A stretch of DNA of 30,390 nt, from positions 1 through 30,390 of the forward strand of contig CAXIUT010000035.1 of NCBI GenBank assembly GCA_964035545.1, in the 5' to 3' direction. Of the stretch, positions 257 through 30,230 are shown in pieces. Within the stretch, counting starts at the first letter, position 1. Every line of letters begins with the position of its first letter. The stretch comes from Bugula neritina (taxonomy: Eukaryota; Animalia; Bryozoa). A program made the translations under genes and the position numbers. The notes under the pieces were generated by a model. The model saw only the letters and a program-made list of their open reading frames with translations. It did no database searches and was not told the DNA's origin.

Positions 257-2736
257 ATGATATAATATCCTCAAACAACCAAAAATAGAACTATTAAAGA
301 CTCATTTATAAGTAATGATAACCCTCAAAGCCATGCTTATCGAACTACTTAAACCCAAAATTATAGAGGAACCACCTAAAATTATTCTCAATCCCATTAA
401 AGACCTCGATCCAGCAGTGAACAATACGGAAGTACTCTGAACTAATTTTTAAACAATGGTGTGACCAAGCCAGGCAAGTACAACAATAAGTATTCCTTCA
501 AGCGAATGCCAAAAGAGAGAGCGAATTAGCGCCCAAATAGTGAATACAGATAAGTACAAACAAACAGACCTGTTATGCCTGAAAGAGTTAGCTATCTCAA
601 CGAATACAAAGAGACAGTTATAAATAGAAATACAGCTAATAACCAAAGGGAAGTAGTAACAGTGAAGCAGTAAAGCCAGTAATGGTAGAAATAAATTATG
701 CAATTGAGAATGAAAGTAGCTGAGCAAGAAGGATTATTGAATCAGATTCGATAGGTAGCATTCAATCGGAAGCAATAGTGTGAGAGACAGAATGCGATTG
801 GAGATAGAAAGTGTATCAATACTCTTGTAGATATTCATAATTTGGCGATTAGAGGTACTACATATCAGTCATTAGCTTATGTTCAAGAGCAAAAGCAGAT
901 GACCATGTCAAATATTCATATTAATCCTCCTACGATTGTTCATAATCCAGTGCCACCGCCTCATATCAATATTACTCATCGTCCTGTTGTTATTCATAAA
1001 CCTGCAGTTATCAATATTTCAGATCAAGCTCCACCTATAATGCCTTCATCATTTCCTAAAGTTCAATCTCCAGAACAGAATTTTGGTAATACTCAAAATA
1101 TTTCTTCTAAACTCGCTAACTATGAGCAATAAATAAGAGATTTGAAGTTAAAAATTGAGAAATTGTAGCAAAATAATTAAAATTTAAAGGGAAAAATAAA
1201 TCATATGTAGAATAATGCTCCAGTACAAGGAATAGACAGAAATATGTTATAGAAGTACAGATAGGAGATAGTTAGACTAAAGCAAGAGATATAGATGATA
1301 AAATAAAAACAAAATTATGAAGAGCATTATTTAAAATTAAAAGAGGATTATGATAAGCTAGTTATTATTAACTAGTAATTAGCCAAACAAAGTACATAGA
1401 ACTACAATAATTTGTAGAAAGCTGAGGATTATATATTGGAGTTGAGAGTATCGATTTAGGAATATTAAAAAAATTAACAAGCTATGAGATAGGAATATTA
1501 GTTAGAGATAAATAGTATTAATGGACAGATAAATATCTTCCAGAATAAAATAGAATAATATAAACTAACCACTGATAAAAAGGAAACTTAAGCTAAAGGA
1601 GATGATCTTGTTGTGGAAAATGGTAAATTGATATTAAAGACTGTGTTTCTTATGGAGGAAATATATCGACTTAATTTGCTTTATTAGGAATTTAGAGGGC
1701 ATCTTGAAAAGGCAGAAGGGCATATTAAATAGACTCAAATTTATATTAAAGAATTATAAGATAATATTGTATCATTAAAATTCAAATATGAAGCAAATAA
1801 CATGTCTGAACTCAAAATTAAGGAATTAGAAAGTAAAATAACATATCTAAGTCAGCAGATAGTACAATATTAAAGTAAAAATAAATTGCAAAAAGATTAA
1901 ATATCAAAAATATAATCTCAATACACTTTGAGTCTCAAAGAAATCAACCAGAAAAACAGTATTCTTTAAGAATTAAATAAAAAACTTAATTTAAAAGTAG
2001 GTAAAAATTAAGAGAATACAAAAATCTTAGTTAAATTAAAATAAGTTTAATAGCATCTTTTAATAGCAGAGAAATATATTGCATAAAATACTCAATTGTG
2101 GTAAAAAGCCAGAAATGACGCTTAATTATTACCTGAGAAGTTAGCTATAATAGATGTACTTAAAAAAGATTTGGGAATAAGTCGAAGTAAAAACAAATAA
2201 TTAAGTGAGAGAATAATGCAATTCGAAAAGATTATTGAGACAATGTAAAAGAAAAGATAAAATAAAGGAGAAATAAATGCTTTGTAGAAAGAGAAAATAG
2301 AACTTTAAGGTAAAGTAAAAAAATATATGCAACTATACATAGACAGTCAAAGTGAAATGGATTAATATGAACAGCAAATTGAGGTTTTTAAAATATAGGC
2401 ATAAAAAAATAGAAATATTTAGAAGATTTTGACATAAAAGGAAAGCAATTTATCTAATGAACTTTCTTCATATCAAGTTATGTATAAAGATATATCGAAT
2501 CATCTTCAAGGAGCTGAGGCATACATTAAAGATCTATAGGGACAACTGTCTAAAATGAGATAGCAATATAATTAGGGTATTTATCTATTAATATAGTTTA
2601 AGCTTCACATAAGGCAGTAAATTAGCATAAAATAGTGCATTCTTCAGCTTTATAAAATGCAGAGCAGCAGATATTCCAGATGGAGAAGATAATGCCCAAA
2701 ACAACTGTCAAACATGCAGGAATTATTAGATTGTGA
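257..2736 (+). CDS. Coiled-coil protein (~819 aa) with a Pro/His-rich segment; one 20-nt intron (2577-2596)
   Basis: Open frame from ATG 257 with TAR read as sense; it includes the supplied ORF 842-1132. Removing gtatttatctattaatatag gives a C-terminus ...KHAGIIRL-TGA(2734-2736). Heptad-like K/E/L composition. Confidence 0.8.
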
Positions 2737-2868
2737 TCAATACAAACCATACTTTTATTATTCATACTATTTTACTGCAATCCATATTGTTTTGTCAAAA
2801 AAATAAGGAGTAATATTACTCATTAAAATGTCTCTTATAAGATATGATAATAATGAATATCAATATGA

Positions 2869-5793
2869 TCATAATTGTTTTCCTAGAGCTTGATATTTTA
2901 ATCTGATGATTTACTGTTCTTTAGTGTCAAGTTGTAGGCTGAGTTCTGATACTTTACGTTGTCTTTCTGACACCTAATCTTATAAATATTGATATTTTTA
3001 TTTCATTATATTGTATTCATATAGAGTTTCTTCAGCATTCTATAGTTGCTTTTACAATCTTAGTACTATGAGTTGCTAATGTTAAAGTTATGCGTTCTTT
3101 TTATTAATTTATCTTTATTTCTATCTTTACAAATTCTCAAATTTATTTTGAAGTTCTTTGATTTTATTTATGCTACTAGATTGTTCATTTAGATAGTTAA
3201 ATGGACTGAAATTATTTTATTATTGATTATTAATTCTTTTTTGTTTTAAAGATTAATTCTATATTCTAATTTTATTCATTTTTTATTTTTGATTAATAAA
3301 ATGTTAATGCAATTGTTTATAATTTTATTTCAATTTATTCTAAGTTTATTGATATTTATAGCTTTCTTATTATATTTTAGATTGAATGATATTTTGTATA
3401 TTTTATTTATACTTTTTATATTAATTTTTTATTTACTAGTTAACATGCATTAGTTCTAAACAATTATTTTAGAGATTAGCATATTACTATCTACCAATAG
3501 ATAAACTACTGATCAGTTTATCTTTTTATTGGTTATCTTCTCTTAACTGATCTGCTTAATTTTGTAGATTTCCAATCATCAATGAATATTCTTTATTTCT
3601 TTGTTATGTTTCTTGAACTCTTTTTAAAGTTATTTCATGTTTGTCTACTAAATTTATTAACTATCGTTTTAGCATCTATGTCTACTCGAATAATTATCTT
3701 CTCTATGTGCTAATAGAAGATTATTGTTATCGACAGAAAGTTATCTATTCACGTAGTTGTCTATTTTAGGCTTATATTTATTTATTAATACAATCTGCAT
3801 GCATTGAGGCATTGAGAGCTAGTTATTTTGCTTGAAGGAGATGTTGAATTTATTATGCTAGCTGTTGATTTCTAGAAGCTAGCTAGTTTATTTGATTTGA
3901 CATCTAAGATGCTTATTACTATGCATTTTTTAGTTATACTTGTCTTATCTTCAAATTTAAATTTTTTATTGTTTTTTACATTTATTCTTTTATTTTATTT
4001 ATCTCTTTAGTTTTTTATTATTTTATTATTTAGATTTATAGCTATTTTTCATATTTATGTCGTTATCTTTATAATTAGTTTTGATATTTTATTCTTTTTA
4101 GTTCATCTTATTGCTATTTTATTATCTATTGATAATTTTATTGGCTTTTTATTTTTTTATTTTAATCTTACATTTATACACTTACAACTAGAGGAGGATT
4201 CAATATTTCCTTTCTTTATCTCTATTTCTTAAATTATGATATTGTTTTTTCATAAATTGTATTTTTAATTTAAAGTTATTCGGCTTTTTATTTGAATATT
4301 TATATTTTTTAATTCATTTATTTACTTTGTTTCAATTATAGATCTCTTTATTTTTAATATTTTAGACATTTTTATGATAATTATTTTATTCTATTCGATG
4401 ATTCTTATAGTTTTTTATTTAAATATTTAATTTATTAATCTTTGTTATTTTATTGAGTTTATTATGTAGATTAAAGCTTTTCTATTCTGTTTAATAATTA
4501 TATTCTTTCATCTACTGTTTAATAGTTCTTTTGGATTAATATCTAATTTTATTATTTAAGTTTCTTTATTTATAATTATAATTTTTCATTTTTATCAAAC
4601 TATTAACTTAAATATTAGTTTTTATCTTTTTATCATTTTTATTTATCTAATTTTTGTATTAATTTATTTCTCTAGTATATCTATAATAAATCTTTTCCAA
4701 AATTTTATTATCCATATTTCGATATAAAATGATAAATACTTTATTTTCTATTCTATTAACTTTCTTTTTAATTAATACATGAAATAAACCATTTTAAATC
4801 TTTTATTTAAGTTGATAATTCCTCATTTTTTTTATTTTGAGTTGAAAGATCAGCTATTAATTGATTTATGCTTTCCTCTTCTGCTTTTTTTATTTAAGAA
4901 TTCGAATATAAATTTCCTTTACTATAACTATAATTATGAATAAGTAATTTCTATCCCGAACGTTATCTTAAATAAAATATCTATCTAAAAAGTGGTTCAA
5001 AGAGTGGTTGTATTTTTTAATGCAGAGATAATAATCTTTTAGTAACATCTTCTTTAGAATAGATATTATTACTTAATTTTAGTATAAAATCTTTAATTGA
5101 ATTTTATTTATAATTTCTAGATTATATTTAAATACAATTAGATTGTAAATATTAAACTATTTTTTTACTTTTATTTCTCATTTATTCATTAACTATTCTA
5201 TCTAATTATGAAAATTATTGACTTATCCCATATCTCATCAATTTATTAAAAAATGATAATATCTATTCATAACTATGAGCCTTTGATTAATACTGTCGAC
5301 CTGTTGCTAGTCGATTAGCTATTTTAATGATGTTATCTCTTTCCATATAACCCATAACTTTAAAATTTTTATTAAGATTATTTTATAAGGATTTTACTTT
5401 CTATTTATCGATGTCCAAAAGATCTGCTATTAAGGTTACATATGTAGTATAGCATTAACTATCTCGGTCTTTTTCATTTAGCATTGTTCTTAACTTTTTT
5501 ATGCTATCAGATATATCATCTTTGTTCATTTATTTTTATTTTTATTTGCTTTTTTTACTAAATACCTTTTTTTACAGAAGAAGGTCTTTTACTTCATCAA
5601 TTATTCGGCTATTTTATTCTAATTGAACTTTTGTATATTTAAAGTAGTTGATAATATCGTCTTTGAGTTGTTCTCCTGGGTTTTTAGCTAAAGAATATTT
5701 GGAATTGGGGAGTTTATTGAATCGACTTATGAGACTTTGTAGTTCCCATTTTTCGTGACTTGTGAAGTTGACTACTATTGGATCTGAATACAT
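2869..5793 (-). CDS. Long coiled-coil hypothetical protein (~974 aa)
   Basis: ATG 5793 (MYSDPIVVNFTSHEKW...) and TGA 2869-2871 (...YQALGKQL) are in the same frame. Spot-checked internal stretches have no in-frame TGA; not every codon was checked. Confidence 0.75.
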
Positions 5794-6358: not shown

Positions 6359-6494
6359 CTTTTAATATCTTAATTTAATTCAGATAAAAATCTTATCATA
6401 ATTAGCTATTTAATTAAATAGAGAATAGTAAAAGCTAATAATAAAAACTTAAAATTCTTTTTTAAAATTATGACTGATGATTTTATATTAATTA

Positions 6495-9400
6495 ATGCAA
6501 CTATTAGTACAGATAGAATATTGTATAAACTGTCATCAGCATTCATGGTGTTCAAAGCATGACGAGGAAAAGTATCTTAATTATTTTCATCTTGTTAAAG
6601 AATCTATACTGAAAAAACTAAGCTAGAATATAGATGTGTTGATAGAAACAATGTAGGTACCGAAACATTACAAAAAAATAAATAAAAGCATTAAAGATAA
6701 TAAATATTATGATTCCTAGAAGTAAGAGTAAATATTTTTCCCTAAAATTGGTGCTTTTTAAATATATTCTGATAAAATACTTATCTTTTCAAAGTTAAAA
6801 ACTGGTTTATGGCCTCACTGTGATAAAATAGCATAGACTATCTTTCAAATGTCAGAGGCTAAAAAAGCTAATAAAGATCTAAATAGGTTTGCATATAAAG
6901 GGAAAAAAGTTCAAGTTGATAAAAACAAACTCCAAAATGCTATTTTCAAAAGAATAGGAGGAAACTAATCAGATTTATTAAAGTAACCAGAAGAAGACCC
7001 TTATATGTATACTTAAAATATCACTTCTCAACCTGTAAAATCAAAATAATTTCAAAAAAGCATGAATTATTAAAGTCCTCATAACAACTTGCCTTCAAGT
7101 GCTAAAAGTTATAATAAAATATATTCATCTGATTTTTATACAAAAAAGGAAAAAGCAAAAATTGAAAGGATAAGATCTCAAGAGAAATCTAAAAAGAAAC
7201 AAAATAGAATCAAAAAAATATATAATGATTATTTAGATTTTAAATAACCAGAACTGAAGGAAGATGTTTCTACACCGTATGCAAAATCTTTATCTAAAAC
7301 TAAAAAACATCATAAAGGATATTCTTCTCCAATAAAAAATCTAAATCCTCTTGATAAAATGATTGATGATGAGTTGAATTAATTCTAAATGGAAACTCCT
7401 CACGAATTGAGAGATTAATAAAAAAAGAAGTTATATAAAAAGTACAATATTGATCCTGAAGAAAAAGGTATTAAAGGAGTTAGTCAACAAAAAATAATTG
7501 AAGAAAAAATAAAATATTAGACTTTACTTGATGCTTTGAAGCAAGAGGAATAAAATTATGTTGAAAAGTTAGAGGTATTAAACAAGAAACTTGGAGTTCC
7601 TAAAAAATATAGTAAATTATCAGATCCTAAAAAAACTATGAAAAATAATGTTGATACCTAGAGAGTAAGAACATAAAATTAAAGAGAAGAAATAGCATTG
7701 CCAAAAATAAAAACTGAAACTAGTCATTAACAAAATACATAAAAAAATTCATAACATTATTCAAAATAAATATAATCGAGAAAAACTAGTAAAGTAAGAG
7801 AATATTAAAATAGTGATTATTCAGAGCCAAATTCTTCTCATAATATAACTAAAGGAAAAATATTTAATCAGAAAAGATCAATTAAATCCAAGATATCTGA
7901 TAGAAATATACCATAAGAATAGAAGAAATTTGGGAGAATAAAAGGTGAGGGAATAAGAAGAAAGGTGGATAATTATATAAATGATACGAAATAAAAGAAG
8001 GTTTAAGCCTAATAAGTTGAATCACCTGTTAAATAATAGAAATAAAGGAAGACATTTAGTTTAAAGAAAGTCATGGATATATATATTTAAAATCCTGTCA
8101 AATTAAATACTTTATTAAGTCAAAAAAGAGAGTATAAAGTTGAAAAGCAGGTTATAAATTAAAGTATTCAGATAGCAATGAGAAAAAGATCAGTGAAGAA
8201 CAGATAATAATTATAAGTTAAAAAATAAGTGAATTAATTTATAGATTAAAGACAAGATAAAGTTTAAGAAGATGAAAAAGTAAAGAAATAGACAATGAAA
8301 TAAGAATTAAATGTGATAAAATAATAAAATAATAGTAATTATGAATCTAAACCCAGAAGATAGACTATTAAATCTGAATAAAATAATCATCATGAAAATA
8401 AGGAGGTAGTTTAATTAAATAGTATTTAAAATAAGAAATAAGAAGTTCAAAATTAATAGATATCGAAAGATAGTCCTTAAGCATAAAAATAAAATTAGAT
8501 TAAATATAAGTAAGAAGAGTAAAATGTTTAATAGAAACATTTATAATAAGAAAAAATTGAATAAACAGAAATTAAATAAAGATAAATTATAGATGAAAAT
8601 AAATAAAAAACTGAAGAGTAGTCTAAAATAAATAAAATTTAATAAAATAAATAGTAATAACCATAAAAGATAAAATAAATCTAGAAAGATTAAAAAGAAG
8701 AAGATACTCCTGAATTAATTGAAAAAGAATAAGAAAATGACTAAAATAAAAAATAATAGTATAATCTGAATAAAATTTAAGAATAAAATAAATAGGAAGA
8801 ACTTTAAAAGAAAGAGTAAATTTAATAAGTTTTAAAAGAAGAAGAAAACAATAATTAGATCATTGAATAAGAAACAATAGAGAAAATATAAACTGATTAA
8901 AATAAGAATATTTAACCTCCAATTTAGATCATAGAAACAAAAAAATAATAATAAAATTAAATCCAGAAATAAATAGTATAGTAATAAGAAAAGATAAATA
9001 AATCTTAAAAAAATTAATAAAAATAGCCTGAAACATTAAAATAAAAAATAAAAGATGAAGATAATTTCAAAAAGTAAATTTCACTAGTATCTTAATAACC
9101 TGAAAAAATATAAAAAATAATAGTTGAATCAAAAGTGTAATAATATACTTCTCAGCCAGCTTAGTCTAGCTCTGAATCAAATTTAGTTAATTATTCTTCA
9201 TAAAAAATTGAAAAAAAAGAAAGAGATAATTAGACTAGTTTAAATTCTGAACAAAAATAGCCTTAATAAAAGTAAATAATTAAATAATAAAAGTAAAAAA
9301 TAAATAACATACCAGAACCTATTGAAGAAGTACCAGAATAACATCATGAAGAAAGTATAAATTATTAAAAATAAAAAGTCGAAGAAAAAATTGAAGCTAC

Positions 9401-12400
9401 TGACAAAAAATAAGATAAATAAGAGGTAAAAAAGGAAAAATCGGAGAAATAAAAATAGATAATTGTTGTCGATTAAAATTAAATACCAAATAAATAGGTT
9501 GAGGCATAAAAAATAGAAGAAAAGCCAAAATAGTAAGAACAGAAATAATAATTTTTAGATAAATCTCAACAGAATAATAAATATTTTATATCAAGAAGGC
9601 CTCCTGGATTAATAGGTCGTTTATCTCCTAAAAGAGATAGATCATTAAATGAATCAAAAAAAGATCGATCAAAAGTAGGTAAAGTGTACACTCTAAATTA
9701 ATCATAAATTCAAAGATAAAATGATTCAAAGTAGTAAACTAAAAAATAGAGTAAAAAGATAAATTAAAGTAGAGATAGTAAGTTTTCAGATTAAAATCAA
9801 GGAATTATTTTGACTGTTAACTAGGATAGCAATGATAATCCATTTCTTGCATTATTCTAAGTTGATAGAAATAAGGTGTCTAAAAAGTATGGTGATGGAA
9901 AATGGCATATTTTGAAAACATAAGAAACTCTTCCATCTAGAGGTTTTTATTCTTTGACATTTTAGGTTATTAATTCATCATAAAATTGTATATAATTTGG
10001 AATAATGCCTGAAAGTTTTTTACCTGTTTAAAATAAGATATGTCCTAGAGCTATTGGATTTCATTTTGCTAATGGTAAAATACATGATACTAATGGTAAT
10101 AAATAAAAGAAAAGTACTGCTTGGAGAAAAGTCAGATAACCTATTCAAAATGGATAAATTGGTTTAGTATAAATGATAGTTAATATTGACTAACAAAATA
10201 TTACTTGGAAATTTCAAAATTAAGAATTTGCTCAAAGTACTATCACTGATTATTTGATTTCTTAAAAATGCGTAGCTTATATAAGTATGATTCATTCAAA
10301 TGATACAATTATATTAAGTCCAGCTAAGAAGAATAAAATTATCAAAAAGGGAGATTCTTCAAATAACAAAATAATCAAAGTGAAAAAAATAGAAGTAGAT
10401 GAAGAAAATATTAATAAAAAATAAAAAGTAGAAGATATATCTTATGTAAATGGTAAAGATAGTATTATCTAAAAAGATTAAAAATAATATAAAAATAAAA
10501 AAGAAGAAACTTTGAATAAAGAAGTCAAACAAAAGTAAGCAAATACAAGACTTTCAGCTTTGTAGAGGAATCAAGAGAGGGCAAAGCAATAGCAGCCAGC
10601 TAATGAGATTAGTATACCTATATCTCATTCTCAGATGAACAGTTCGATTCGATAGACATCACCAAGCAATATCAAAGTAAATAAATAAGAGAAATAAACA
10701 AGCGAAGGATATACTCCTATACCATTGTCAATAAGCTTTGATAAAGTATCAAACCCTTTCATTGACTTTTATGAAGTCAAATCTAATAGTATTACCAAAG
10801 TCAACGGAGCTAACTCTTGGCATATCTTGAAAACTGCTGAAATTTTACCTTCTTCAGGAAAGTATTCTTTCTCTTTTACTATTATTGAGTCTTAAATGAA
10901 CTGCATCGAAGTTGGAATCATGCCAAAAGACTATAATCCTGTTGAGAATAAAATTTGCTAAAAATCTTTAGGCCTTCATTATGCCAATGGAAAAGTTCAT
11001 GATACTAAAGGAAATAAAGAAAAAAAGACTACTTCTTGGAGAGCTGTATGCTAACCTGCTTAAAAAGGAAAAGTAGGGACTATTGAGCTTAATGTAGATG
11101 CTGATAGTCAGATTATTTAATGGAAGTTTGAAGGAAATATCATAGCTAAAAGTATCCTTACCAATTATCTTAAAGGAATTCCTTGTGTAGCCTATATTAG
11201 TGTTGTTCACCTCAAAGATACTGTCTCAATCATGAATCTTAAAATTAAATAAACTTAAACTCATCAAGTATAAGCAATTTAGGTTTAATCTAAAATATCT
11301 AAAAGAATTGCAGAAAATAATGAAAGTGAAAAGTAAGCAAATACAAGACTTTCAGCTTTGTAGAGGAATCAAGAGAGGGCAAAGCAATAGCAGCCAGCTA
11401 ATGAGATTAGTATACCTATATCTCATTCTCAGATGAACAGTTCGATTCGATAGACATCACCAAGCAATATCAAAGTAAATAAATAAGAGAAATAAACAAG
11501 CGAAGGATATACTCCTATACCATTGTCAATAAGCTTTGATAAAGTATCAAACCCTTTCATTGACTTTTATGAAGTCAAATCTAATAGTATTACCAAAGTC
11601 AACGGAGCTAACTCTTGGCATATCTTGAAAACTGCTGAAATTTTACCTTCTTCAGGAAAGTATTCTTTCTCTTTTACTATTATTGAGTCTTAAATGAACT
11701 GCATCGAAGTTGGAATCATGCCAAAAGACTATAATCCTGTTGAGAATAAAATTTGCTAAAAATCTTTAGGCCTTCATTATGCCAATGGAAAAGTTCATGA
11801 TACTAAAGGAAATAAAGAAAAAAAGACTACTTCTTGGAGAGCTGTATGCTAACCTGCTTAAAAAGGAAAAGTAGGGACTATTGAGCTTAATGTAGATGCT
11901 GATAGTCAGATTATTTAATGGAAGTTTGAAGGAAATATCATAGCTAAAAGTATCCTTACCAATTATCTTAAAGGAATTCCTTGTGTAGCCTATATTAGTG
12001 TTGTTCACCTCAAAGATACTGTCTCAATCATGAATCTTAAAATTAAATAAACTTAAACTCATCAAGTATAAGCAATTTAGGTTTAATCTAAAATATCTAA
12101 AAGAATTGCAGAAAATAATGAAAGTGAAAAGTAAGCAAATACAAGACTTTCAGCTTTGTAGAGGAATCAAGAGAGGGCAAAGCAATAGCAGCCAGCTAAT
12201 GAGATTAGTATACCTATATCTCATTCTCAGATGAACAGTTCGATTCGATAGACATCACCAAGCAATATCAAAGTAAATAAATAAGAGAAATAAACAAGCG
12301 AAGGATATACTCCTATACCATTGTCAATAAGCTTTGATAAAGTATCAAACCCTTTCATTGACTTTTATGAAGTCAAATCTAATAGTATTACCAAAGTCAA

Positions 12401-13559
12401 CGGAGCTAACTCTTGGCATATCTTGAAAACTGCTGAAATTTTACCTTCTTCAGGAAAGTATTCTTTCTCTTTTACTATTATTGAGTCTTAAATGAACTGC
12501 ATCGAAGTTGGAATCATGCCAAAAGACTATAATCCTGTTGAGAATAAAATTTGCTAAAAATCTTTAGGCCTTCATTATGCCAATGGAAAAGTTCATGATA
12601 CTAAAGGAAATAAAGAAAAAAAGACTACTTCTTGGAGAGCTGTATGCTAACCTGCTTAAAAAGGAAAAGTAGGGACTATTGAGCTTAATGTAGATGCTGA
12701 TAGTCAGATTATTTAATGGAAGTTTGAAGGAAATATCATAGCTAAAAGTATCCTTACCAATTATCTTAAAGGAATTCCTTGTGTAGCCTATATTAGTGTT
12801 GTTCACCTCAAAGATACTGTCTCAATCATGAATAAATAACTTCTCTAAACTGAATCTCCCAAATAATAAACTAATTAAATCTTACCCACTGCTAAAGTTA
12901 TCGTTTCTCATAAAGTATAACTAAAATAGAAAACATCAAAATAATAAATAATAAATATTTAAACAAAATCTCCTAATTAGACATTTTCATAATTTCCAAC
13001 TTTTAAGATCTTTCTAAATATAGATAAAGCAATAAATTCTTTTATAGATTTTTACTAAATAAAATAAAATAAAATTTAAAAAACAAATGGCCCTAATCTA
13101 TGGCATATGGTTCAATCTCAAGAGACTCTTCCATCATCTGGCAAATATAGTTTATCTTTTACAATCCTCAAATCAGGATTAAACTGTATTTAAGTTGGTA
13201 TTTTACCTGATTAATATACAGTAACATAAAATAGAATTTGTACTAAATCTTTAGGTTTTCATTTTGCTAATGGTAAAATACATGATACTAAAGGAAGAAA
13301 ATAAAAGTCATCAACAGCTTGGAGATAAGTATGCTAGCCTGCTAAACCTGGAACTCTTGGCACTATTTAGCTTGATATTGATTATGATTCTTAAATAGTT
13401 TACTGGAAGTTTTAAGGCAAAGTATTTGCAGAAAGTGTTATAACAAATCATTTATTAAGTAAACCTATGAGAGCTTATGTTAGTATGGTTCATATAAATG
13501 ATTTAATACTTCTTAACCAGCCATTCAAATAATCAAAAAAGGATGTTAAAATAAATTGA
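6495..13559 (+). CDS. Giant protein (~2354 aa): N-terminal Rdx/SelW-like CxxC domain, long charged low-complexity linker, five SPRY/ConA-like beta-sandwich domains
   Basis: Starts MQLLVQIEYCINCHQHSWCSKHDEEKY and contains PKIGAF[TAA]IY...LIFSKLKTGLWP, matching Rdx-family motifs. The same frame was confirmed at several points through to TGA 13557-13559. A repeated domain WHILKTxExLPSSGKYSFSF...VGIMP...LGxHxANGKxHDTKG...WKF...AYISxxH occurs five times. Confidence 0.85.
10531..12833 (+). repeat. Intragenic tandem repeat, 798-bp unit, ~2.9 copies (starts 10531, 11329, 12127)
   Basis: Units look identical by eye, and the supplied antisense ORFs at 10968/11766/12564 are identical and spaced 798 apart. 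798 nt = 266 codons, so frame is preserved. Confidence 0.97.
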
Positions 13560-13627: not shown

Positions 13628-14125
13628 TCAATGATGTGATTCTTTGAAAATTTAATCCAAAAGATCAAAGTATTTATTTTTAAACTTTTATGATAGATGA
13701 TACTAACTTTATTTTTATATTCTATCTATCAATCGTTTTGCAGATGGGTTCTTCATCTAATCAAGATGAGCTTTCTAGTTGTGAATTTTATTAAGATTTG
13801 AACCATAAAAATATTCATCAACTATCTGATTTAATTCTTGACTTGGATCAACAACCTTACTATCTTTCTTTTTATCTTTCTTATTTTCATATTATATTTC
13901 ATGCTAGGCTTTCTTTGAGAAAAAAGTTTATACTTAAGCTAAGCAGTATATTTATGCTTAGCCTTTTTTTGTATTCGAGTGAGCATCTTTATGAGCTTTG
14001 ATACACTATCTACATAATATTTCTAGGCAGTGATGATTGGCACAAAGGTATTCATATTTTTATTTTGGATGTTTATGACAATTATCTTTTATTTTTTGTT
14101 TCCACTCAGTTCCACAGCAACTCAT
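13628..14125 (-). CDS. B-box-type zinc finger protein (~165 aa)
   Basis: MSCCGTEWK...CHKHPKxKYEYLCANHHCLEILCRxCIKAHKDAH gives a C-x2-H...C...C-x2-C...H-x3-H pattern. Open frame of 498 nt to TGA. Confidence 0.8.
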
Positions 14126-14242
14126 TTGTAATAAATCTTATTTAAAAGTAAACAAATAAAAAATATCTTTAAAGAGTTATAAGTATTATTTATCAGTACA
14201 ATTAGTTAAGATGATATATTTAATCACTAAATATAAGGTATT

Positions 14243-14668
14243 TCATAGTTGATGATTGGTAGGTTTCTTTAAAATGATAGACTAAAAAATATTGTCTTAT
14301 TTTTTCTTTCTTTACAACTTAAAATCATCGATATATTTATATTTTCTCATTAGCCATTCTCTTATTTCTGGAATAGCTACATCAAGTGAATTTAGTCCTC
14401 TCTATATTGATAAAATACTACATTGTTGCATCTATAGGGATCAGCTTAGTTTTATAGAAGGAACTCCATCAGCTTTTTTAGACAATTATAAGCAGCATAA
14501 TGCAAAATAGTATCTCCAGTCTGATATAAAGATCGATACTTGATTGATTGGTTCTATTATGTCTAATTTAGATTCTTTGACATGTTAGATGATTTAATCT
14601 TATTGTTTGAGCATGATTTTAGTCATTAGATTTTGTTATCTGAGTTCAAGAGATTCATCGTTTCCCAT
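14243..14668 (-). CDS. Small ankyrin-repeat protein (~128 aa); introns 14521-14539 (19 nt) and 14402-14421 (20 nt)
   Basis: After splicing: MGNDESL...QTGDTILHYAAYNCLKKLMEFLLxNxADPYRCNNRGLNSLDVA, which fits the ankyrin consensus. MG start is a possible myristoylation site. Confidence 0.85.
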
Positions 14669-14725
14669 TGAACTTTAAAGTTTTAATAATAATATGTAGT
14701 CAAATGAGATTAACTAAAAATCAAG

Positions 14726-16321
<1,596 letters not shown>

Positions 16322-16363
16322 TTATAATTATAACCCTTTAAAATTGTATTATAGAATTTTCAA

Positions 16364-17578
16364 TCATAGGTTAAAAGCTATGAGCCTTTATGGTTCAAAG
16401 TAGGTGACCTATCTGTGAATATTCAGAAGAGTTTTATCTGAAAAGTCAACTGGGTAGTATCGAGATGAAGCTTTTTCTTTGTCTAAAAGACCTAATTCCT
16501 TATAGAGTCTTGCGACTAATTCTGAACAGAAATAAGTCTTTTTTTCTTAGTCTTCACTATCTCGTTTCAGTACAGAATTGAAAGTAAATATCTTATCAAG
16601 ACTTATTTAAAACTCTTTTCCCATTGATTTGGCAACGAAAGCTTCAATAACTGATATGTCATGAGGAGTTAATTTAATTTTTAATCTTCTCCATGCGATT
16701 CTTAGTCGATACATATTTACTTATCAGTTGAATTATACCATCCGAATTTGATAACACTTTTCCAAGGAGTTAATCCTACTCCTTATCCAGAACTACTTTC
16801 AAATATAAATATTTAATTCTTTTTATTTCTGAGAATAACTCCAACATGATCTATCTTACTAAACAAATACCATATTAACTATCAGTAAATAATCTCTGGA
16901 CAGTAGCTGCACTATGCTGGGACTTAAAGAGGATAACATCTAATGAGTTACAACTTTTAGCGAATTATTCATGGGAAATATGCTATTTAGTATAGAAGTC
17001 ATTTGTTTTACTGGGAAGATAAGTAAAATGTTTTGATTTGCCTTCTGCAGTATCAATTGCTTTTTTGAGTAGTGCTATCCAATCATCAACTATTTGATCT
17101 TTTTCTTGTTGTTCAATTGGTTAGAAATAGAACTTTTTATTACATTGTTAAACTTTGATGATAAAGTAACTTCCTTTGTTGGTTACTTCTACAGCCTAGG
17201 TATCAAAATTGAGGAACTGATGGATAAAATCTTGTGCCATTTGTACTTTTAATTTGAAGTTGACTAGTTCTACATCATATTTTCTTCTCTGAATAGTAGA
17301 TGCGTTACCGATGAAATACAAGAGAAGAAACCTTATTCTTCAATATAGAATCTTCCTTTTTTGTAATAGACTTGGTAGTTTTAATCTGGTCTAACAAAAC
17401 CAGGCATAATTCTAAAAGTATTTTAGTCAACTTCTTCTTGTTCGATAATAGTGGTCATTTGAAGTTGAGATTGTTGTGTATACTTATTGGATTCCATATT
17501 GTTAAAATAAGATTTCTTAAGTGAGTTGTCGAAGGCTTTTTTAAGGTCTTCTTTGGCACCTTTTTTTTCAGGCTACAT
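16364..17578 (-). CDS. PH-like domain + permuted papain-like NlpC/P60 (peptidase C92/YiiX-like) protein (~384 aa); three 20-nt introns (17289-17308, 16851-16870, 16701-16720)
   Basis: Motifs DVILFK, YDHVG (catalytic His; formed across an intron junction) and YFCSELVA (catalytic Cys). PH-like C-terminal helix DDWIALLKKAI. Spliced length 1155 nt. Confidence 0.85.
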
Positions 17579-17701
17579 AATTTATATTTTATACTCCAAT
17601 TTAAACATAGCCACTAAATAACATAAATGTTGACTAATTCAATCTCTTTAATAATTTATGCATATTTTATTCAATTTATTTTACATATTTATATAAATTC
17701 A

Positions 17702-18850
17702 ATGAATTAATAAGAACCAAAAGAATAGCCGCCACAAAATATTGATCCTGAAATGGAAAGATTAAATTCTTTAGGGAGTTTAAGATCCATAGATTCAGCC
17801 AATAAATAGCCTTTATAAAAAAAGAATGAGGAAGAAGGGTTGGAACTTCAAGTTGTTCAAAGTAAAGTTGATAAGGGTATTAATCGATAAGAAATTATGA
17901 GAATGTTTAATGAACAAGTACAGAGAGAGGAGCTAGAAAGAGAAGAGATATAAAAAAGAAGAATGTAGATGCGTTTGAAGAGTAAATAGATGCCTAAAAT
18001 AACTCCAAAAAGATCACAAGTTGAAGATAAAAAGATAAGTAAATAACAAGCTATTCAACAAGCTTTAAATTAAAAGAATTTACGCCTTCGTAAAAGAGTT
18101 TAACCTATTTCAAGAAAATACCATACATTGTATCGACCTTCAATTTATGATACTAAAATGAATAGATATAGATTTTAATGTAAAGAAAAACTGATTATCA
18201 ATCTCTGTTTTGGAATAGAGGAACTACGTGAACTTGATCCACAATAGCTTTCTGAAGCAGATAGAGATATTATTAATCAAGATTCTTACTATTTGGTTAA
18301 AAAAAAGGCTACTTTGATTGATGCAAGTATGGTTAAACTTCTTAATAAAGGAGATAGAAATGATATAAGTCGATAGTATAAAACTCAATGGGAAACTTTA
18401 CTAACGAATATTAAAGATTAAAGTAACTTAGAGTTAAAACGTAAAATTTTAACAGGAACATTTGAGCCAACTAAAATAGCAGTAGCTAATGAAATTGATT
18501 TTTTTACTTTGGCTAAAAGAGAACAAATTATTGAAAAGCAAAAGCGATACGTGGCTGAATTTACAGTTGAAAAAGCTATTGTGCCTTCTATGAGACCTGA
18601 AAACGAAGAAATAATGGATAGACCTCGACCTAAATTAGTAGAAGAGCCTTCTCAAGTAGAAATACCCGTTCTTAAGACTAAACACAGCAGTTTAGCAAAC
18701 AAGTATATTGAAGAATCATCGATAACTCAAATATAGGAGTTGTTAAGCGAAAGACAGTTGGAGAAGATGTTGAAAAGGTTGTAAGAGGACCTTCATGGAC
18801 AATCTAAGACAATGTTGATGGATAATTTTAAGAAAACATTCTAAGTATGA
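17702..18850 (+). CDS. Hypothetical charged/coiled-coil protein (~382 aa)
   Basis: Open frame from ATG 17702 to TGA 18848-18850, including the supplied ORF 18509-18736. No recognisable motif. Confidence 0.75.
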
Positions 18851-18896
18851 TATATCTCAATATTCATAATTCTTTAACATTAAAACAAAGCATCAT

Positions 18897-19637
18897 TCAC
18901 ATATATATTTTTCTTCTGGCGCTATCTCTTTGTTTTTTTTATTAGAGTTTGGCGAAGGGGTTCATGGGTTCACTTGATAGATATGTGTTATTTCTAGGTT
19001 GTGGTTTGGATATTGTATTTTGGATTGTTATGTTTTAGGTTTTGTCTTGAGGTTTGATATCTTTGATGAAGTTAAGGACTTGAAGAGTTTATGATCCTGG
19101 GGAAATAAAATCTTACTGAACATAGGAAATATCAGAGATGAAGGCTATAGATGTCTGTGGGTCATTGAGTCTGATTTTATTGACATGACTTTAAAGTTCT
19201 TTGGAGGGAATTCTAGCGGTCCATGGTTATTTCTTTTATTCTTATATTTCTGTTTTGATATCTTTGTTATAAAAAATTCTTGATGATTTTGCTGATGTTT
19301 TATGGCTGTTTATTTTTGATCCAAGCTTTATGCCAACACTCTAATTTTATTGATGTTTTTGGATAGCTTTGACTTTTGGGCTAAATTTATCAGAAGAGAA
19401 GGTGGGTTGTGAAGTGTGGGTTTATTTGGTGTGAGAGAGTCCTCTTTTAGGTGTGACTAGATTGATTTTTTTTTGTTTGACAGGTTTTGGTTCTGAATGT
19501 ATTCTGAGTCGTGCGGGCGGGATGTGAGTCTAGATGGTAGTTGTATGTAAATTAGAGAAGCAGCAGCCGACGGGAATGGTTTCTTATTTTTGGTATTTGA
19601 TGGTTTGTGGTTGTATGGGTTTGAGGTGGTGTTTCAT
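18897..19637 (-). CDS. Hypothetical basic, probably disordered protein (~246 aa)
   Basis: MKHHLKPIQPQ... 741-nt open frame ending ...ARRKIYM-TGA. It fills the gap between its neighbours. Confidence 0.65.
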
Positions 19638-19841
19638 GTCTAATAAATAATATGTTGGAACAGAATAGAAGAAATAACTTGTGTTTTCTTATCAAACTTA
19701 TCAGAGAGTTTACAACACAATTTAAGAATGTTACTTGTGTAAATAAAAATTAACATTGCTATGTCAACACTTATTATCAAAGATATGATTAATTGATAGT
19801 TAGTGATATTGAATAAGTTTTTAATTGAATAAATAATAATC

Positions 19842-20713
19842 ATGGCTGTAAATGTCTTCAGCAAATCAAAAGCAAGCACTCTTGCTAAAATAGCAGCTTT
19901 GCCTCGCTACAGACATCCCATGGATCTCATTAACTAGCCTCATATACCCTACGAATTGCAACTCAAGCAAATTGATAACTCTATTTCATTCAAATAAGGG
20001 CAATATCTGTCTCCTCAACATTTCAACTTATGCAAATCCAGTGTAGAATGCAGAAAGGAGTATCAAGAGAGTGTTGATCCTGAAAGTAGGTCGAAAGTGG
20101 CACATAGACATTATAAACTATGGGAGAAGTATCTTCAGAATTGCATTTCTCAGCCTGAAGTAGATATGAATTAAAGTAGAACCAGCTAACTGAATAGCAA
20201 AAGCAGCGTGTTTATGAAGCTATGTTGACAGCTAAGTAGCGTAACTAGTAGAGGTTGGCATTGAACAGATTTGTTAAATTTGGATATGAGTATTCAACAG
20301 CATTCAAGGTAGATATTCCATTGAACCCAGTTATTATGATGAAGATGGTTCATCCTCATTTTGGATATTTGAACAATATTCCCAATCTCACTCAATATAA
20401 ATATAATTATACTGAACTATTTCAGTTGATCTAATAGTTTATTGCTGCAAGTTATGCTAGAGAAAAGGGGTATAATTTGCATGGTTCTGAGTTGGTGAGT
20501 TTTATATTTTGGAAGATTTTGGTTGGTAAGCAAGCTAGAATCGATCCTAGTACATTTATATCTTTTATGAAAGTGTTTAAATTCAACTAACTGAGTGAAG
20601 AAAACTTCCAGTAGAAGTTAAAATATAGCATTTACGATGGAGAGATGATAGAGGGAGATGGGAAGGTTCGATTCGATGTCTTTAGAAAAATATTTCTGGA
20701 TAGAGATTTATGA
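19842..20713 (+). CDS. Globular protein (~283 aa) with a basic/Ala/Ser N-terminus, possibly mitochondrial; one 20-nt intron (20160-20179)
   Basis: MAVNVFSKSKASTLAKIAALPRYRHP... Removing gtagatatgaattaaagtag restores the frame to ...RFDVFRKIFLDRDL-TGA. The localisation is inference only. Confidence 0.8.
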
Positions 20714-20750
20714 TGTATTTGATAATTTCTAATTGATCTATATATAGATA

Positions 20751-22262
20751 TCACTGTTATTCTTTATTTTATTTGTTTTTAGCAGTTAGTTAGCGAAGAA
20801 CTGGGAGGTGATCTGCTAATACTACTTATAGCTACTTCTTTTAAAATCCTTAGCCGGTAAATTAGTATTTTGTTTTTATTATGAACTAGATATCTTCTAC
20901 TCGAACTCCATATAGCTTCATCAGTACGACTAGCTTTTGTCTTACAGTTGAAGTGCTGAAGGCAAGAGTGCATAGTATGATATCGATGATTTATACTACT
21001 ATCAGACCTTATTTGACTTTTTAGTAATATTGTTAAGGTCCACTCTCCTTAAATACATCTTTACCTATGTTTTGCATGTATTATGTTCTGATTTCAAAGA
21101 GTTTTTAAAGTTTACTAAATCTTTTTTCAGTTAATTTGGCTTAAACTCTCGCTCTATAGATTTAATTATCACTTCTGATCATAACTAATACTACTCTCAT
21201 GCAATTTTAATCGATTACCATTTGTTAGTCGATATCTTTTCCTTTGAGACCTTGTCGATGCAAAATAGGAAATATATATTTCAGAGATCCTAAATCTATA
21301 AACTAGTCGATTAATTTATTTTACAGCTAATGAGGTAGAAACATAAAAGAGTTAGCAATAGATTTGAGTGCTGAAATAGAATAGTTATTTTTTGCCTTGA
21401 TAAAAAGAAGCATCATCTAATTGCCTTTCATCTAATGGTATATTATCTTTGATTTAAGCAGTTATTATGATTGATTGATCAGCACCACGCTCAAGCAGTC
21501 AAACAAATTACTAACATATTATTTTTAATCATTGTTTCCTGGAGATTTAGATTGATATGGTTTGATAGATTATACTAGAATTTCCATGCCATACAATCGA
21601 TGGAATTTCAGCTGTGCGTTTTAAGAATTAGTCAGTAGTGAAATAAGTAGATCACTACCTACATATTTATTATCATCGATTACTTTATGTTTGACGATAT
21701 AGTTGGGCATAATTCTATTGGCCAAATAATCGATTATTTTAGTATCTGTGACTAGTAGTTCGATTGAGGTGTCGACTTGTTCGACTAGTGCTTATAGTAT
21801 TTTCAATATTTTGAGGGATACTTCATATTATTCAACGCTTTCTTATTCGTCCATTTTGTTTAGTGTTTATACTAGAGATTAGTATAGTCCGTTTTAGACC
21901 AGCCACACACACATGCGGTAGTATACTTCAAATATTTAGTCTTTCTCTGGTTATTATGCTACTATCTAGTGGATAAATTCAATGCAGCTGATGTTGATGT
22001 CTGAGTTGGGATGGTTGAGGAGTTTTAGAATAGAAGTTAGTACTTTAGATTCGATCACTATTGATATGTGTTATTGTGTGAGTTATTGCATGCCTTGGAG
22101 GATGGTGTCGATGTTTTATTAGGATTGGTAGAAACGCATGGGTTCGGTAGGGTATTTCATTCTGAGGTTTATGTTTGTTTCATAGAGATTGTGTAAGTCT
22201 TTGTGGTAACTTTCAAGTAGTGGAAGGGTTATCTCGTTCTCAGGTTAAGGTTTTTACTACAT
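20751..22262 (-). CDS. CTNNBL1: Beta-catenin-like protein 1 (Prp19/CDC5L spliceosome-associated ARM protein), ~503 aa
   Basis: LRMKYPTEPMRFYQS, LLNHPNSDI, DDNKY, YVSNLFDCL and FIDLGSLKYIFP match remembered CTNNBL1 blocks (LRIKFPDNPEKFMESE, LLGHDNTDV, MENLFDSL, FVDILGLRTIFP). Intronless frame of 1512 nt. Confidence 0.85.
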
Positions 22263-25198: not shown

Positions 25199-26659
25199 AT
25201 GTTTGGAGGATAAAGTTAAAGAAACCTCTTACATTCGACTCCCAACATCCGAATAGCTCCTGACAAAGTGACCCTATATCATGAAAAACAACAATATTCT
25301 AAAGAGATATTCGTATAAAGTGCCTAATAATCAAGTATTTTACACGTACCTATCTACATCTACGGCTATATGAATGAATTAATAAAGGTTGATATTGAGT
25401 AGGAGTATGTAAGTGGTAGATTTACTATATATGCGACTCCTTTGATAAATTTGTTGATAAGTCATGTGTTGTAGTTGAGGAAGAAGGAAATAGCTGAGAT
25501 GGATGCTAATCGAATTAATCGCTATATTCGTTCTTAGTTGGATAAAGTTAAAGATTATATAAGGAATAATTTGATTTTAGAGTGTGGAGAAACTGTGATT
25601 GATATTATTAACTAGAATAAGATAAAACAAAAAAATAGGAAGTATAGTTTGTAGTCATTTGATGAGGAATCTGGAAGTGATTAAGATTAGGACTAACCTG
25701 ATAACTTTTATTACAAAGAAGTAGTGAATAGTTAGGCTGTAAATACTGTTACTTATCAGATAAAAGGTATTTTTACTTGTGAATTTGACTGGGATAATTT
25801 TTACTTTCCTTATCTAGAAATAGTTTCTGCTCTTAAAATCAGAGCAAGACAGCTATATTATGATAAAATTATAATAAGGTATAATATGTTAGAGTTCAGT
25901 AAGAATTCCTAATCTTTTGTTAGACAATTTTGTTTGAAATTCATACAAAAAAGTGAGACTCAATTTGGTATATATAATGTGAATTGTCAGGAGGGGAGTT
26001 ATTCTGTGAATGCAGTCAAAAAATAAATGTAGAAACATCATTATTAATAGAATAATCGGTATTCTATTCCTACTATGGATTAATATTTTTCTGAAACGAG
26101 GTATTTTTAGTTTAAATTTCAAGTATTTTCTTATAATTTACCTTTTATGCTGAGAAATTTGATTCCTCATTTGATATTGCTTTTTGTGTCTATTATGAGT
26201 TATTTTGGAGGAGCCGATTAAATACCTCCAGTTTATGGTAATATAATTTTGCTAGGAATTACTTTGATAGAATCGCTATCTAATTTTAGGAGGAGCAAGT
26301 TTGACAATTCAACTATAAATATATATCAGATTAATCTTTTTGGTATCATTTTGATAAATCTTATGTTATTTATAGTTTCTACTAAAAATTTTTATGGAGA
26401 CAATAACTAAAAACCAAATATTAATGCTGAAAATGCTATATTTTGGATATCTGTGGGAATAGGAGTCTTTTTCTTTGCTTCTAATTACTACATATTTTTT
26501 TATTTTGGATTAAAAAAATAATAATACTCCTTTGAGTCGTTAAAAGTGATGAAAAAGAAAAGAATGGAGTGGTGGATATGGAATTAGTAGGAGATAATTG
26601 AAACTCTTAATGAAGTATAACCTACTGTATCATCTCTTACTTCATTGAGTAGTGTTTGA
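25199..26659 (+). CDS. Four-TM membrane protein, putative Cys-less pentameric ligand-gated ion channel (pLGIC)-like subunit (~486 aa)
   Basis: Open frame of 1461 nt. Pro-loop-like IKGIFTCEFDWDNFYFPY, followed by four hydrophobic helices, the first containing Pro (FMLRNLIPHLILLFVSIMSYF). The ORF is solid; the family call is tentative. Confidence 0.6.
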
Positions 26660-26704: not shown

Positions 26705-28822
26705 ATGAAAGCTAATAAGGAAAAAGAGTGGCAGTTTTAAGAATAAGTTAAATGCCAGGAACTACCTTTTAACGAAGAATAAACTATAAAGCTTTAAAAT
26801 TCTATTCTATATGTAAGGTACAAACAATGGTTAAAAGATCATGGTGCCTTAATTGATTCTCGTCTCAGATATCCTTCCTATTTTGGAGAAGCTAAGAAAG
26901 GAGTTATTGGAATAAGCGCTGCTCAGATGATAGATAAAAATAGAGCTGTTATCGCTGTACCTTACAACTTACTTATTACGGTTGAAAAAGTAAAATAAGA
27001 TATTTAGCTCTTTGAAATAGTTAAAGATAATGTGAGTTATTTTAAACATGACTAAGACGCAGCTATGAAAATATTAGTTCTTTACATATCTAGTGAGTTG
27101 ATTAAAGGTTAAAAATCTATCTATTATCCTTATTTTTGTATTTCTAATTAAGATTTTCTTAGTGGTTGGGAAAGCAGGTACTTACATATGCTTGAAAATA
27201 GAGATCTAATGAAGAAAATGAAGGAACAGCGTTAAGTTATTGAACTTTAGTTTATGAATTTTTTAAGAATCTATCGTAGATATGATAATATTTTTCCTCA
27301 AAAAATGAGTAATAACTAATACCAAAAAATATTCTAAAAATCTTATATTTTTATTGTTACTCGAGCATTTGGATGGTCTCTTCCTTCCATATCTCTGATT
27401 CCACTAGGTGATTCTTTGAATCATAGTAATATCAGATATGTTAATCATTTCGTAGTAAACACTGAGGAAGAAGTCAATCCTAAGCAAGAGGAATTAATGA
27501 CTCAGACTGGATATAAACAGTATCACAAAGAAGTTAACTTATCTTTGCTAAAGAATGAAAGTTTAAAGTTAGAAGAAAAGGATTTGGCTTAATTAAGAAA
27601 GTAGAAAAAGAGTAAGGTGATGAAGTTTGTTTAGAAACATCAGGATTTATTGATTCAAAGTGAGAAACTAAAAGGAATGTAGATAGAGAAGATAGTTTTA
27701 CCTAAAAATAAATCTGAACTTAGAAATAAACAGTATCATATTTTACATCAACAGTATAAAGCTGGTGTCCATAAATTGAAAAATCTTCATTTTTATTAAT
27801 CGTCTTGCGATTAAGATAACGATACTGATGAAGAGACTTTATTTGAGAGAGAGATGAAGTATGAGAAGTTTACATTTTACGATAAGGAAAGAGTAGTTAA
27901 TGAAAATAACAAGAAAAAGGAAGTAAAAAAGTTATGGAAGATGTATTTATAAGATTCAGAATAAGAAGAGGAAGAAGAATAAAAGCCTTAAAGAATTAAA
28001 AATCAAACAAGTAAAAAATAGAATTAGAAATTAAAAGAAGAAATAAAATAAAAGTTGTTTAAATAAAACGAATCAAGTGAAGTATCATATGAAGATTCTG
28101 AAGATGAAGATGATCCTGTTTGGGACTGGATTGATAAGGCTAATCATAAAAAGACATATTTTATAATGAGTACTAAGGAAGTAGTGAGATAGAAATAACA
28201 AATTTATAACTTCTATGGAAGAAGAACAAATAGATTTTTACTTAGCAATTACAATTTTGTATTAAAAGATAATATCTATGATTCATATCCTCTAAGTGTC
28301 AAATTGGATGATAAAATATCGACTAAAGTAGGTGTATCTAAGTTACTTATATTTTCTAAGAAAGAAGAGGAAGGAATTAAGAGTAGGTAGTTTAGTTTAA
28401 AGAGATATTTGATAAATAATGATTTGGTCAATATTTGTCGAAGTTATGTTATTTTATGGAATAAAAAATAATGGAATCAGTGTCGATTGACTATTCCTTT
28501 TGATAGATAAATTGAGGTTAAAACTTTGGAGTTGTATCAGTAAATTATCAAATATTTATCTAAATAGTTTACAACTTCTATTGAATAAGATTAATAAGAA
28601 GAGGAAGAAGAGGTACTTAAACATGAAGAAAGAATGTCGATTCTTTTTAGAAATTAATACAAAAAGATTCTTAAAGGTCAAGATAAGTTAATAGTTCGTA
28701 GTCTTCAATATCTGAAGAAGTGGGAAGTGAACTCTATTCAGAAGTTTTAGTAGCCAGATATGAAGTGGATAAAAAGATTGAAGCCATATATATTATCTCT
28801 TGAATCTGCAGTTTCTTTATGA
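26705..28822 (+). CDS. SET-domain methyltransferase, SETD3/SETD6/Rubisco-LSMT-like (~705 aa)
   Basis: Motifs WLKDHGA, IAVPYNLLIT, SIYYPYF, VTRAFGW, LIPLGDSLNH and QIYNFYGRRTNRFLLSNYNF. Single frame to TGA 28820-28822. Confidence 0.92.
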
Positions 28823-28871
28823 TAGAAATGATGATTAGAATACCTTATTATAATTCCATTTATAATCGAAG

Positions 28872-30230
28872 ATGATCAAGAAAGATTTCTAAAATGAAAT
28901 AGTTCTTTTTGATGACTAGGATGAGTAGATATAATAAAATCCTGTACCTAAATAGCCAGGAGAGATATTCCTTTTCGATGATTAAGAGTGCCTTGAAGTA
29001 TCTGAATCTTTTCATGATGTTGAAGAACCATCATATTCATCGTAGGAAAGAAAAGAAATGAGTAAGGAGTAATATAGTGATAAGCTTAATGAGCTTCAAG
29101 GTAAAATTATGTTTACGAATATATCTAATTTGGGAAAAGATGTGAAAAAGGCTAAGAAGACATATTTCTAAGAGGCTAAATAAAAAAGAAAAAGTATTTA
29201 ATCTGTTTGTAAACAAAGAAATTCTAAAAGAATTTAATAAATTGTTTTTTAACCTAAAGCAGGTAAAATTAAAGTTAATTTTGATTATGACAGGTCGAAA
29301 ATTAACAACTTTTTTCATTAACAAAAAAAATAAAATCGTCTATAGAGAAAATCTCAAAAACTTGAAGAATTTTCTATGAGCGATGAAATTGTACCTGAAA
29401 GTGCTACTGAAAGTTTTAACAAACAAATGCATCAAAAAAGTTTAACAGGAGCTTAATTTAAAGAAAAGAATGATTTGAAAATCGAAGAGGATCTCAACAA
29501 GAACACTTTGAAAGTGTCTAATTTTAGATAATTTTTATACAACCAACTAAAGCCAAGTTACACAATATTTTTATCAATTAAGAAGACGGTTAGTGGGATA
29601 ATAAATTCGACATACAAGATGTATTTTCAGGAGAATAGTCGATTTGTGATGTCATGTTAGAAGCAGGGTTTTTCTAAATATGTTTTTTCAACTAGTTAGG
29701 TTCATATCGCATAAGATCATATAAGTTATTTGGGCAAGATGTAGAGTAATTTTTTTGGAACTGAGTTTCAGATGTATGATTCAGGATAGTAGTATTCAAA
29801 AACAAAAATGATGTAAAATTATAAAAAGCAGTTGGCTTCTATCAATTATCATCAAGATTAGCATCAACCTCGAGAGATAACTACTTATATTACTACTTGT
29901 GATAATAAATCGTCAGAATTTACTATATTGGATGGAAATAATGATATTATTCAAAGCAAGGTCAAATATTCTAGTTATAAAAATATACATAAGTTGAAAA
30001 GTAAAGATCCTGGATTTGATGAGAATTAGAATTGTTATAAATTAGATTTTAAGGAAGTTGCTGGAGTTGCTTCTACTAAAAATTTTATCGTTTAGAGTCC
30101 AGAATATCCTGATGCGCTTATTTTTGGAAGGCAAGATAAAGATTCTTATATAATGAGAATTAAGGCTCCTTTTTCGATAATGCAAGCAGTGTCAATTGCC
30201 ATGTCGAGTATTCATCGAAAGTTTCTGTGA
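28872..30230 (+). CDS. Tubby-domain protein (~452 aa)
   Basis: C-terminal YLGKMxSNFFGTEFQMYDSG, PREI, CYKLDF, ASTKNF, FGR and PFSIMQAVSIAMSS are Tubby C-terminal motifs. Acidic N-terminal extension. Confidence 0.92.

Follow-up and report, generated by a model that had tools for sequence, protein, structure and literature searches.

The window analysed here is the entire contig C44 (30,390 nt) of a 216-Mb, 321-contig animal assembly. It represents a whole macronuclear chromosome from a ciliate sequenced together with the animal host, and its genes appear to be read with a code in which TAA and TAG specify Glu and TGA is the only stop codon. C4A2 telomeric repeats cap both ends of C44 and the ends of many other small contigs of the assembly, and animal-type rDNA arrays and tRNA families lie on the large contigs C1–C9 and C135; together, these distributions identify C44 as the chromosome of a cobiont. 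The chromosome is linear and gene-dense, with 16–17 genes at the level of open reading frames (ORFs) in 30 kb between its two telomeres, as in a macronuclear chromosome, and its base composition is 28% G+C overall (20 to 33% across 2-kb windows).

Under the standard or bacterial code, the 30.4 kb of C44 contain no ORF of ≥100 amino acids (aa). With TGA as the sole stop, ORFs extend to 2,361 codons; TGA occurs at 2.4% of positions, and the chance of a TGA-free frame of this length is about e^−57. A preliminary description made from the sequence alone had counted 17 genes, which is approximately right as an ORF-level tally (16–17). The features of the window are listed below (TAR, TAA or TAG; GAR, GAA or GAG; charges are net charges with TAR translated as indicated).

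1–81, no strand: left telomere, (CCCCAA)n, read directly from the sequence
257–2893, plus: coiled-coil-type ORF with 38 TAA and 26 TAG in frame and a TGA end; charge −14 (Glu) or +50 (Gln)
2869–4632, minus: K-rich coiled-coil ORF with 81 TAA and 22 TAG and only 28 GAR; charge −37 (Glu) or +66 (Gln)
6474–7064, plus: Rdx-like (CxxC) gene with TAA 6759–6761 in GAF[TAA]IY; weak Pfam Rdx match (E 0.26)
7074–13559, plus: long ORF rich in K and E that contains five SPRY-like modules
14726–16363, minus: Ser/Thr protein kinase, Pfam Pkinase on pieces; TAA 15782–15784 stands for the APE-motif Glu
17525–18850, plus: TFIIS_M-domain gene, PF07500 on orthologous fragments
19797–20713, plus: two-exon gene, frames joined by a ~20-nt intron; orthologues in metagenome contigs L084 and L089
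20751–22289, minus: CTNNBL1-like gene with 40 TAA and 8 TAG, PF08216 on orthologous fragments; orthologues at 55–65% identity
26696–28822, plus: gene labelled SET-domain in the preliminary description, with TAA-containing acidic runs; 64% identical over 706 aa to orthologues on metagenome contigs L089 and L091
28782–30230, plus: Tubby-family gene, Pfam Tub E 2.3e-6 on the last 44 codons; TGA at 30228–30230
30304–30390, no strand: right telomere, (GGGGTT)n, read directly from the sequence

The gene labels proposed earlier fared unevenly. Those of the kinase and of CTNNBL1 held, the former also through a PDB alignment obtained for the piece that begins directly 3′ of TAA 15782–15784, and the latter through the orthologous fragments. 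The Rdx label stays weak and the SET label has no Pfam or PDB match; searches of both databases with stop-free pieces of the SET-like and CTNNBL genes themselves returned no match. Within the SPRY-like ORF, a 798-bp unit spanning 266 codons is repeated in tandem (~2.9 copies; 10531–12833). The repeat is 100% identical and in frame and duplicates one of the SPRY-like modules; it may be a recent real expansion or an assembly artefact.

Across the 16 ORF-level genes, TAR accounts for 8.3% of codons (538 TAA and 189 TAG), GAR for 5.8% (507), CAR (CAA or CAG) for 3.4% and AAR (AAA or AAG) for 11.6%. Translating TAR as Gln gives 15 of the 16 ORFs a positive net charge (+8 to +139); with Glu, charges range from −85 to +11. 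TAR codons are the majority Glu codons of this ciliate, making up about 59–61% of all Glu codons (727 TAR vs 507 GAR in the window ORFs; 169 vs 110 in the small-GTPase gene set described below). All eight TAR-containing stretches on which the preliminary description had built its Glu assignment were recovered at the same positions, on the same strands and in the same frames. Among these are ...TPITMAP[TAA]ILKGKPYD in the kinase (15782–15784, minus strand), KIGAF[TAA]IYSD in the Rdx-like gene (6759–6761) and the two acidic runs at 27953–27982 and 25661–25702. The assignment itself was upheld: in three independent tests that scored the two codons separately, Glu was the best meaning of both TAA and TAG. 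In the two likelihood-based tests, its lead over the next residue was 57 to 207 nats for TAA and 34 to 128 nats for TAG.

The first test compared the window genes with orthologues. Querying stop-free pieces of three window genes yielded metagenome contigs L084–L091 from related ciliates, which are syntenic with the window from 14.7 to 30.2 kb and likewise carry in-frame TAR; a scan of JGI metagenomes with the piece of the TFIIS-like gene gave no match. L089 (ENA ERZ27293389; part of a 38-kb contig) contains, in conserved order, orthologues of the genes at 17.5–30.2 kb. On L088 lie orthologues of the kinase, of the gene next to it and of the CTNNBL gene, and L084 has a G4T2 telomere at its end. 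Synteny, in-frame TAR and this telomere together indicate that public metagenomes contain a clade of such ciliates whose small chromosomes are conserved.

For 12 window genes (37–78% identity), we translated TAR as X and tallied the codons opposite it in coding frames only. TAA was paired with GAR 167 times, with TAR 101 times, with GAY (GAC or GAT) 42 times and with CAR 8 times; the corresponding counts for TAG were 97, 75, 19 and 9. CAR codons had TAR as their partner in only 17 of 518 pairings, and AAR stood opposite TAA fewer than 8 times. The partner profile of GAR codons was similar to that of TAR, and TAR did not rank among the eight partners most often seen opposite AAR. Likelihoods were calculated from the observed partner distribution of each of the 20 amino acids in these same alignments. 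Relative to E, D lay at −207 and Q at −393 nats for TAA, and D at −128 and Q at −206 nats for TAG; Glu was best for both codons, and also in each of the 12 genes taken singly. At the sites cited in the preliminary description, GAA, GAG or TAR was found opposite in 11 of the 12 checked, including all five cited in the CTNNBL1-like gene. The TAA of the kinase APE motif is matched by GAA in L088, and the TAA codons at 28196 and 27962 of the SET-labelled gene by GAA in both L089 and L091. The SPRY-like modules inside the window are too diverged from one another to decide the meaning of TAR alone; GAR is weakly the commonest partner there (E 11, K 7, S 7 and Q 5 of 52 pairings).

The second test used small GTPases from other contigs of the ciliate, where 20 loci, two of them identical, provided 19 genes. 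We obtained 150 representatives (P0001–P0150) from a 65-residue stop-free piece and built a Rab hidden Markov model (HMM) from 37 full-length ones. Scoring was Codetta-like and used raw column counts from 210 Ras/Rab domains, as the smoothed emissions of HMMER discriminated poorly. TAA (115 sites) scored +90.6 nats for E, with D at −10, K at −15 and Q at −70; TAG (54 sites) scored +47.7 nats for E and −22 for Q. All 16 control codons were decoded correctly (including GAA, GAG, CAA, CAG, AAA, AAG, GAT, GAC, AAT, TAT, TTA, AGA, TCA and ACT). The motif used to choose the loci itself has TAR at a Glu position, so the test was repeated with that column dropped: TAA (101 sites) scored +55 for E, followed by K at −2, and TAG (49 sites) +35 for E, followed by Q at +0.8. 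Bootstrapping over the GTPase genes gave Glu in 1000 of 1000 replicates. The Glu of the ETSAK motif, which is E in 93% of the references, is TAR in 9 of the 19 genes. Introns at the GTPase exon junctions, with lengths estimated from HMM coordinates across the junctions, measured 20 nt in 15 of 21 cases; the others, at junctions with uncertain alignment boundaries, spanned 11–26 nt.

The third test was a census of conserved motifs in the whole assembly. D-T-A-G-Q-[TAR] occurred 23 times on small contigs (18 TAA, 5 TAG) and 3 times in the ~200-Mb host, with 0 matches for the reversed control; D-T-A-G-[TAR]-[GAR/TAR], which places TAR at the Gln, had 0 matches in the whole assembly. G-T-x-x-Y-x-A-P-[TAR], with TAR at the Glu of the kinase APE motif, occurred 29 times, always on small contigs (22 TAA, 7 TAG; control 0). 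At Lys positions, TAR was found 0 times on small contigs in the P-loop (G-D-x-x-V-G-K-S/T) and at chance level in the catalytic loop (H-R-D-x-K-x-x-N). The invariant Glu positions of DTAGQE and APE are therefore occupied by 40 TAA and 12 TAG, and 42 different small contigs carry TAR at such positions. TAR outnumbers CAR more than twofold in coding sequence, yet has 0 occurrences at the invariant Gln; this census excludes Gln.

Termination was examined at gene ends with homologues. The statement in the preliminary description that all genes end in TGA is partly circular for ORFs that were defined by TGA; it is independently supported in the Tub and TFIIS-like genes. Pfam Tub profile positions 223–254 of 256 lie just before the TGA at 30228–30230, and four orthologues of the TFIIS-like gene (52–78% identity) stop with TGA at the same aligned position, with TAR two to twenty codons upstream. 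In the Rab genes with a complete tail, CC or CxC is directly followed by TGA in 8 of 8, and no in-frame TGA was found inside full-length Rab matches. TGA as the only stop is supported by the conserved C-termini of 8 Rab genes, Tub and five TFIIS-like orthologues. TAR codons occur near the very end of genes (...KTF[TAA]V-TGA and KS[TAA]CC-TGA), and no sign of termination at TAR was seen among the ~14 gene ends compared with homologues.

Together, these results indicate, with a probability of roughly 0.93, that UAA and UAG encode Glu and that UGA is the only stop, making the nuclear code of this ciliate that of NCBI table 30, the peritrich code. UAA and UAG would be read by suppressor tRNAs charged with Glu, of which a tRNA(UUA) would have to exist outside the assembled fraction, and eRF1 would be restricted to UGA. 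The organism would be a peritrich and probably an epibiont.

Several points weigh against this interpretation. The evidence consists of DNA sequence, with which minor misincorporation or rare termination at TAR remains compatible. Universal 18S patterns applied to the assembly matched host rDNA only and yielded no ciliate 18S, which bears on the peritrich identity. Three different patterns found no tRNA(UUA) on ciliate contigs, and the tRNA(CUA) genes that were detected do not look clearly derived from tRNA-Glu, their isotype being ambiguous.

Decoders were sought with a pattern that combined a UUA or CUA anticodon loop with a T-loop, and the assembly was also searched with RF00005, for which 63 of 18,702 candidates were scored, mostly from the host. 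The two tRNA(CUA) genes lie on ciliate contigs (C10:16787–16858 and C256:3981–4052); each is followed by a T-run (Pol III terminator), and they are 75–80% identical to each other and share a Glu-like T-arm. In the C10 gene, a Glu-like acceptor end (U1-A72, C2-G71 and C3-G70) is joined to a D-loop and an anticodon arm of Gln type; the tRNA(CUA) anticodon arm reads GGACTCTAAATCC vs GGACTCTGAATCC in host tRNA-Gln. Total identity does not separate the isotypes: the C10 gene shares 69% with host tRNA-Gln, 68% with host tRNA-Glu and 57% with the ciliate tRNA-Glu(UUC) on C54. BLAST with tRNA(CUA) returned the paralogue only, and patterns for the D-arm and T-arm gave no further relatives. Two other candidates were set aside: one on C247 is a tRNA-Gly, and a match on C73 is an odd, probably mitochondrial tRNA. 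Pattern searches of the assembly also found no canonical ciliate tRNA-Gln. The assembly evidently lacks part of the ciliate genome. The tRNA result neither supports nor contradicts Glu.

Because the only UAG decoders found are Glu/Gln mosaics, we considered whether the Glu code arose by re-targeting an ancestral oligohymenophorean tRNA-Gln suppressor to GluRS, instead of by an anticodon mutation in tRNA-Glu, or whether the ciliate is a non-peritrich with its own origin of UAR=Glu. This pair of histories seems unlikely, if worth keeping in view.

Other contigs add side observations. C4A2 tracts occur at several internal positions of C10, C11, C14 and C15, besides the contig ends, which suggests joined minichromosomes or alternative fragmentation sites. 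C73 (70,610 bp) is very AT-rich (~19–25% G+C), carries tRNAs including one with a 6-nt anticodon loop (TTTAAG) that is present twice, and is probably the ciliate mitochondrial genome. At 41–45 kb of C214, at least 11 tRNA genes are packed within 1.2 kb. Such tight clustering is of the bacterial or organellar kind, and the cluster belongs to another cobiont or an organelle and not to the ciliate nucleus. The GTPase loci C102:18073–19123 and C178:35766–36833 have identical translations and HMM matches on different contigs; they may represent duplicated or alternatively processed chromosomes, or redundancy of the assembly.

As for the organism, a sessile peritrich epibiont is probably its most economical description, given the C4A2 telomeres, a relative in a marine biofilm, the several host labels and the code itself. 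The relative, from a metagenome of a marine biofilm (PMC6355793), is a close one, at 78% identity over 259 aa; marine biofilm was the one habitat given by the sample accessions. DNA nearly identical to window positions 14000–22000 is present in sequencing runs under three organism labels from three studies, with shares of sampled words of 0.88 and 0.85 (organism A), 0.36 and 0.22 (organism B) and 0.25 and 0.22 (organism C); several hosts are thus accompanied by this ciliate or one very close to it.

The rival that survives best leaves the meaning of the codons untouched and places UAR=Glu in a ciliate outside the peritrichs, as an independent second origin. It draws on the lack of ciliate rDNA or a named marker among the contigs, on suppressor tRNA bodies that are mosaic and not plainly Glu-derived, and on the several code changes already documented in Oligohymenophorea (PMC10553269). 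However, UAR=Glu among ciliates is confined to Peritrichia, with a single inferred origin (PMC10553269, PMC11687900), and the telomeres, the marine biofilm relative and the three host labels all fit sessile epibionts. We therefore regard a second origin as improbable.

A slimmer chance attaches to a context-dependent code of the Condylostoma or karyorelict type, in which TAR would mean Glu inside genes and stop near some 3′ ends. The partial circularity of TGA-only ORF ends and the number of gene ends compared with homologues (~14) leave some room for it, but every compared C-terminus (8 Rab, Tub and five TFIIS-like) lies at a TGA where the family ends, and TAR is present up to the last codons.

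Table 6, with both TAA and TAG as Gln, is the commonest code in Oligohymenophorea, a class that the C4A2 telomeres fit, and could claim the Gln-like anticodon arm of tRNA(CUA), but it is contradicted to the point of near-impossibility by 0 TAR at the Gln of DTAGQE vs 23 at the adjacent Glu, by the scores for Gln in the profiles (−70 and −22 nats) and the orthologues (−393 and −206 nats vs E), and by the rarity of CAR opposite TAR. A split code with TAA as Lys and TAG as Glu has a published precedent in the same class (Oligohymenophorea sp. PL0344; PMC10553269) and would match the recovery of CUA suppressors without UUA, but is just as remote, given TAA alone at invariant Glu (18 in DTAGQE, 22 in APE), K at −15 vs E at +91 nats in the TAA profile, GAR 167 vs AAR <8 in the orthologues, and a P-loop Lys that TAR never occupies on ciliate contigs.

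With UAA and UAG as Glu and UGA as sole stop, the consequences extend beyond C44. At least 42 small contigs of the animal assembly carry TAR at invariant Glu, and C4A2 caps many small contigs; these are ciliate chromosomes rather than host DNA. Dozens, perhaps hundreds, of contigs need table 30; the standard code breaks and table 6 mistranslates their genes. About 8% of the codons in the window ORFs are TAR. Read appropriately, the contigs provide a resource of telomere-to-telomere macronuclear chromosomes from a table-30 ciliate with TAR-majority Glu, ~20-nt introns and relatives with conserved synteny in several metagenomes. The remaining scientific interest lies in the origin and identity of the mosaic suppressor tRNAs.

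The code itself has been described before, and this ciliate adds a further carrier of it. The peritrich code (table 30; Vorticella, Opisthonecta, Carchesium and Campanella) has the same UAA and UAG as Glu and UGA as sole stop, and the codes of Carchesium and Campanella were predicted from transcriptomes by Swart et al. (PMC4967479). There is no difference in code between these species and the ciliate described here, which has oligohymenophorean-type C4A2 telomeres and is probably a peritrich; a point of difference is that the bodies of its tRNA(CUA) genes look like Glu/Gln mosaics. Table 6 (Tetrahymena, Paramecium and Oxytricha) likewise combines sense UAR, UGA as sole stop and suppressor tRNAs, but UAR is Gln there, a meaning rejected here. 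Oligohymenophorea sp. PL0344, from the same class, also reads UAG as Glu via tRNA(CUA) and stops at UGA, whereas its UAA is Lys and the UAA of the present ciliate is Glu (PMC10553269). Blastocrithidia (table 31) shares UAR=Glu, but is a trypanosomatid in which UGA is Trp and UAA doubles as a stop; in the present ciliate, UGA terminates.

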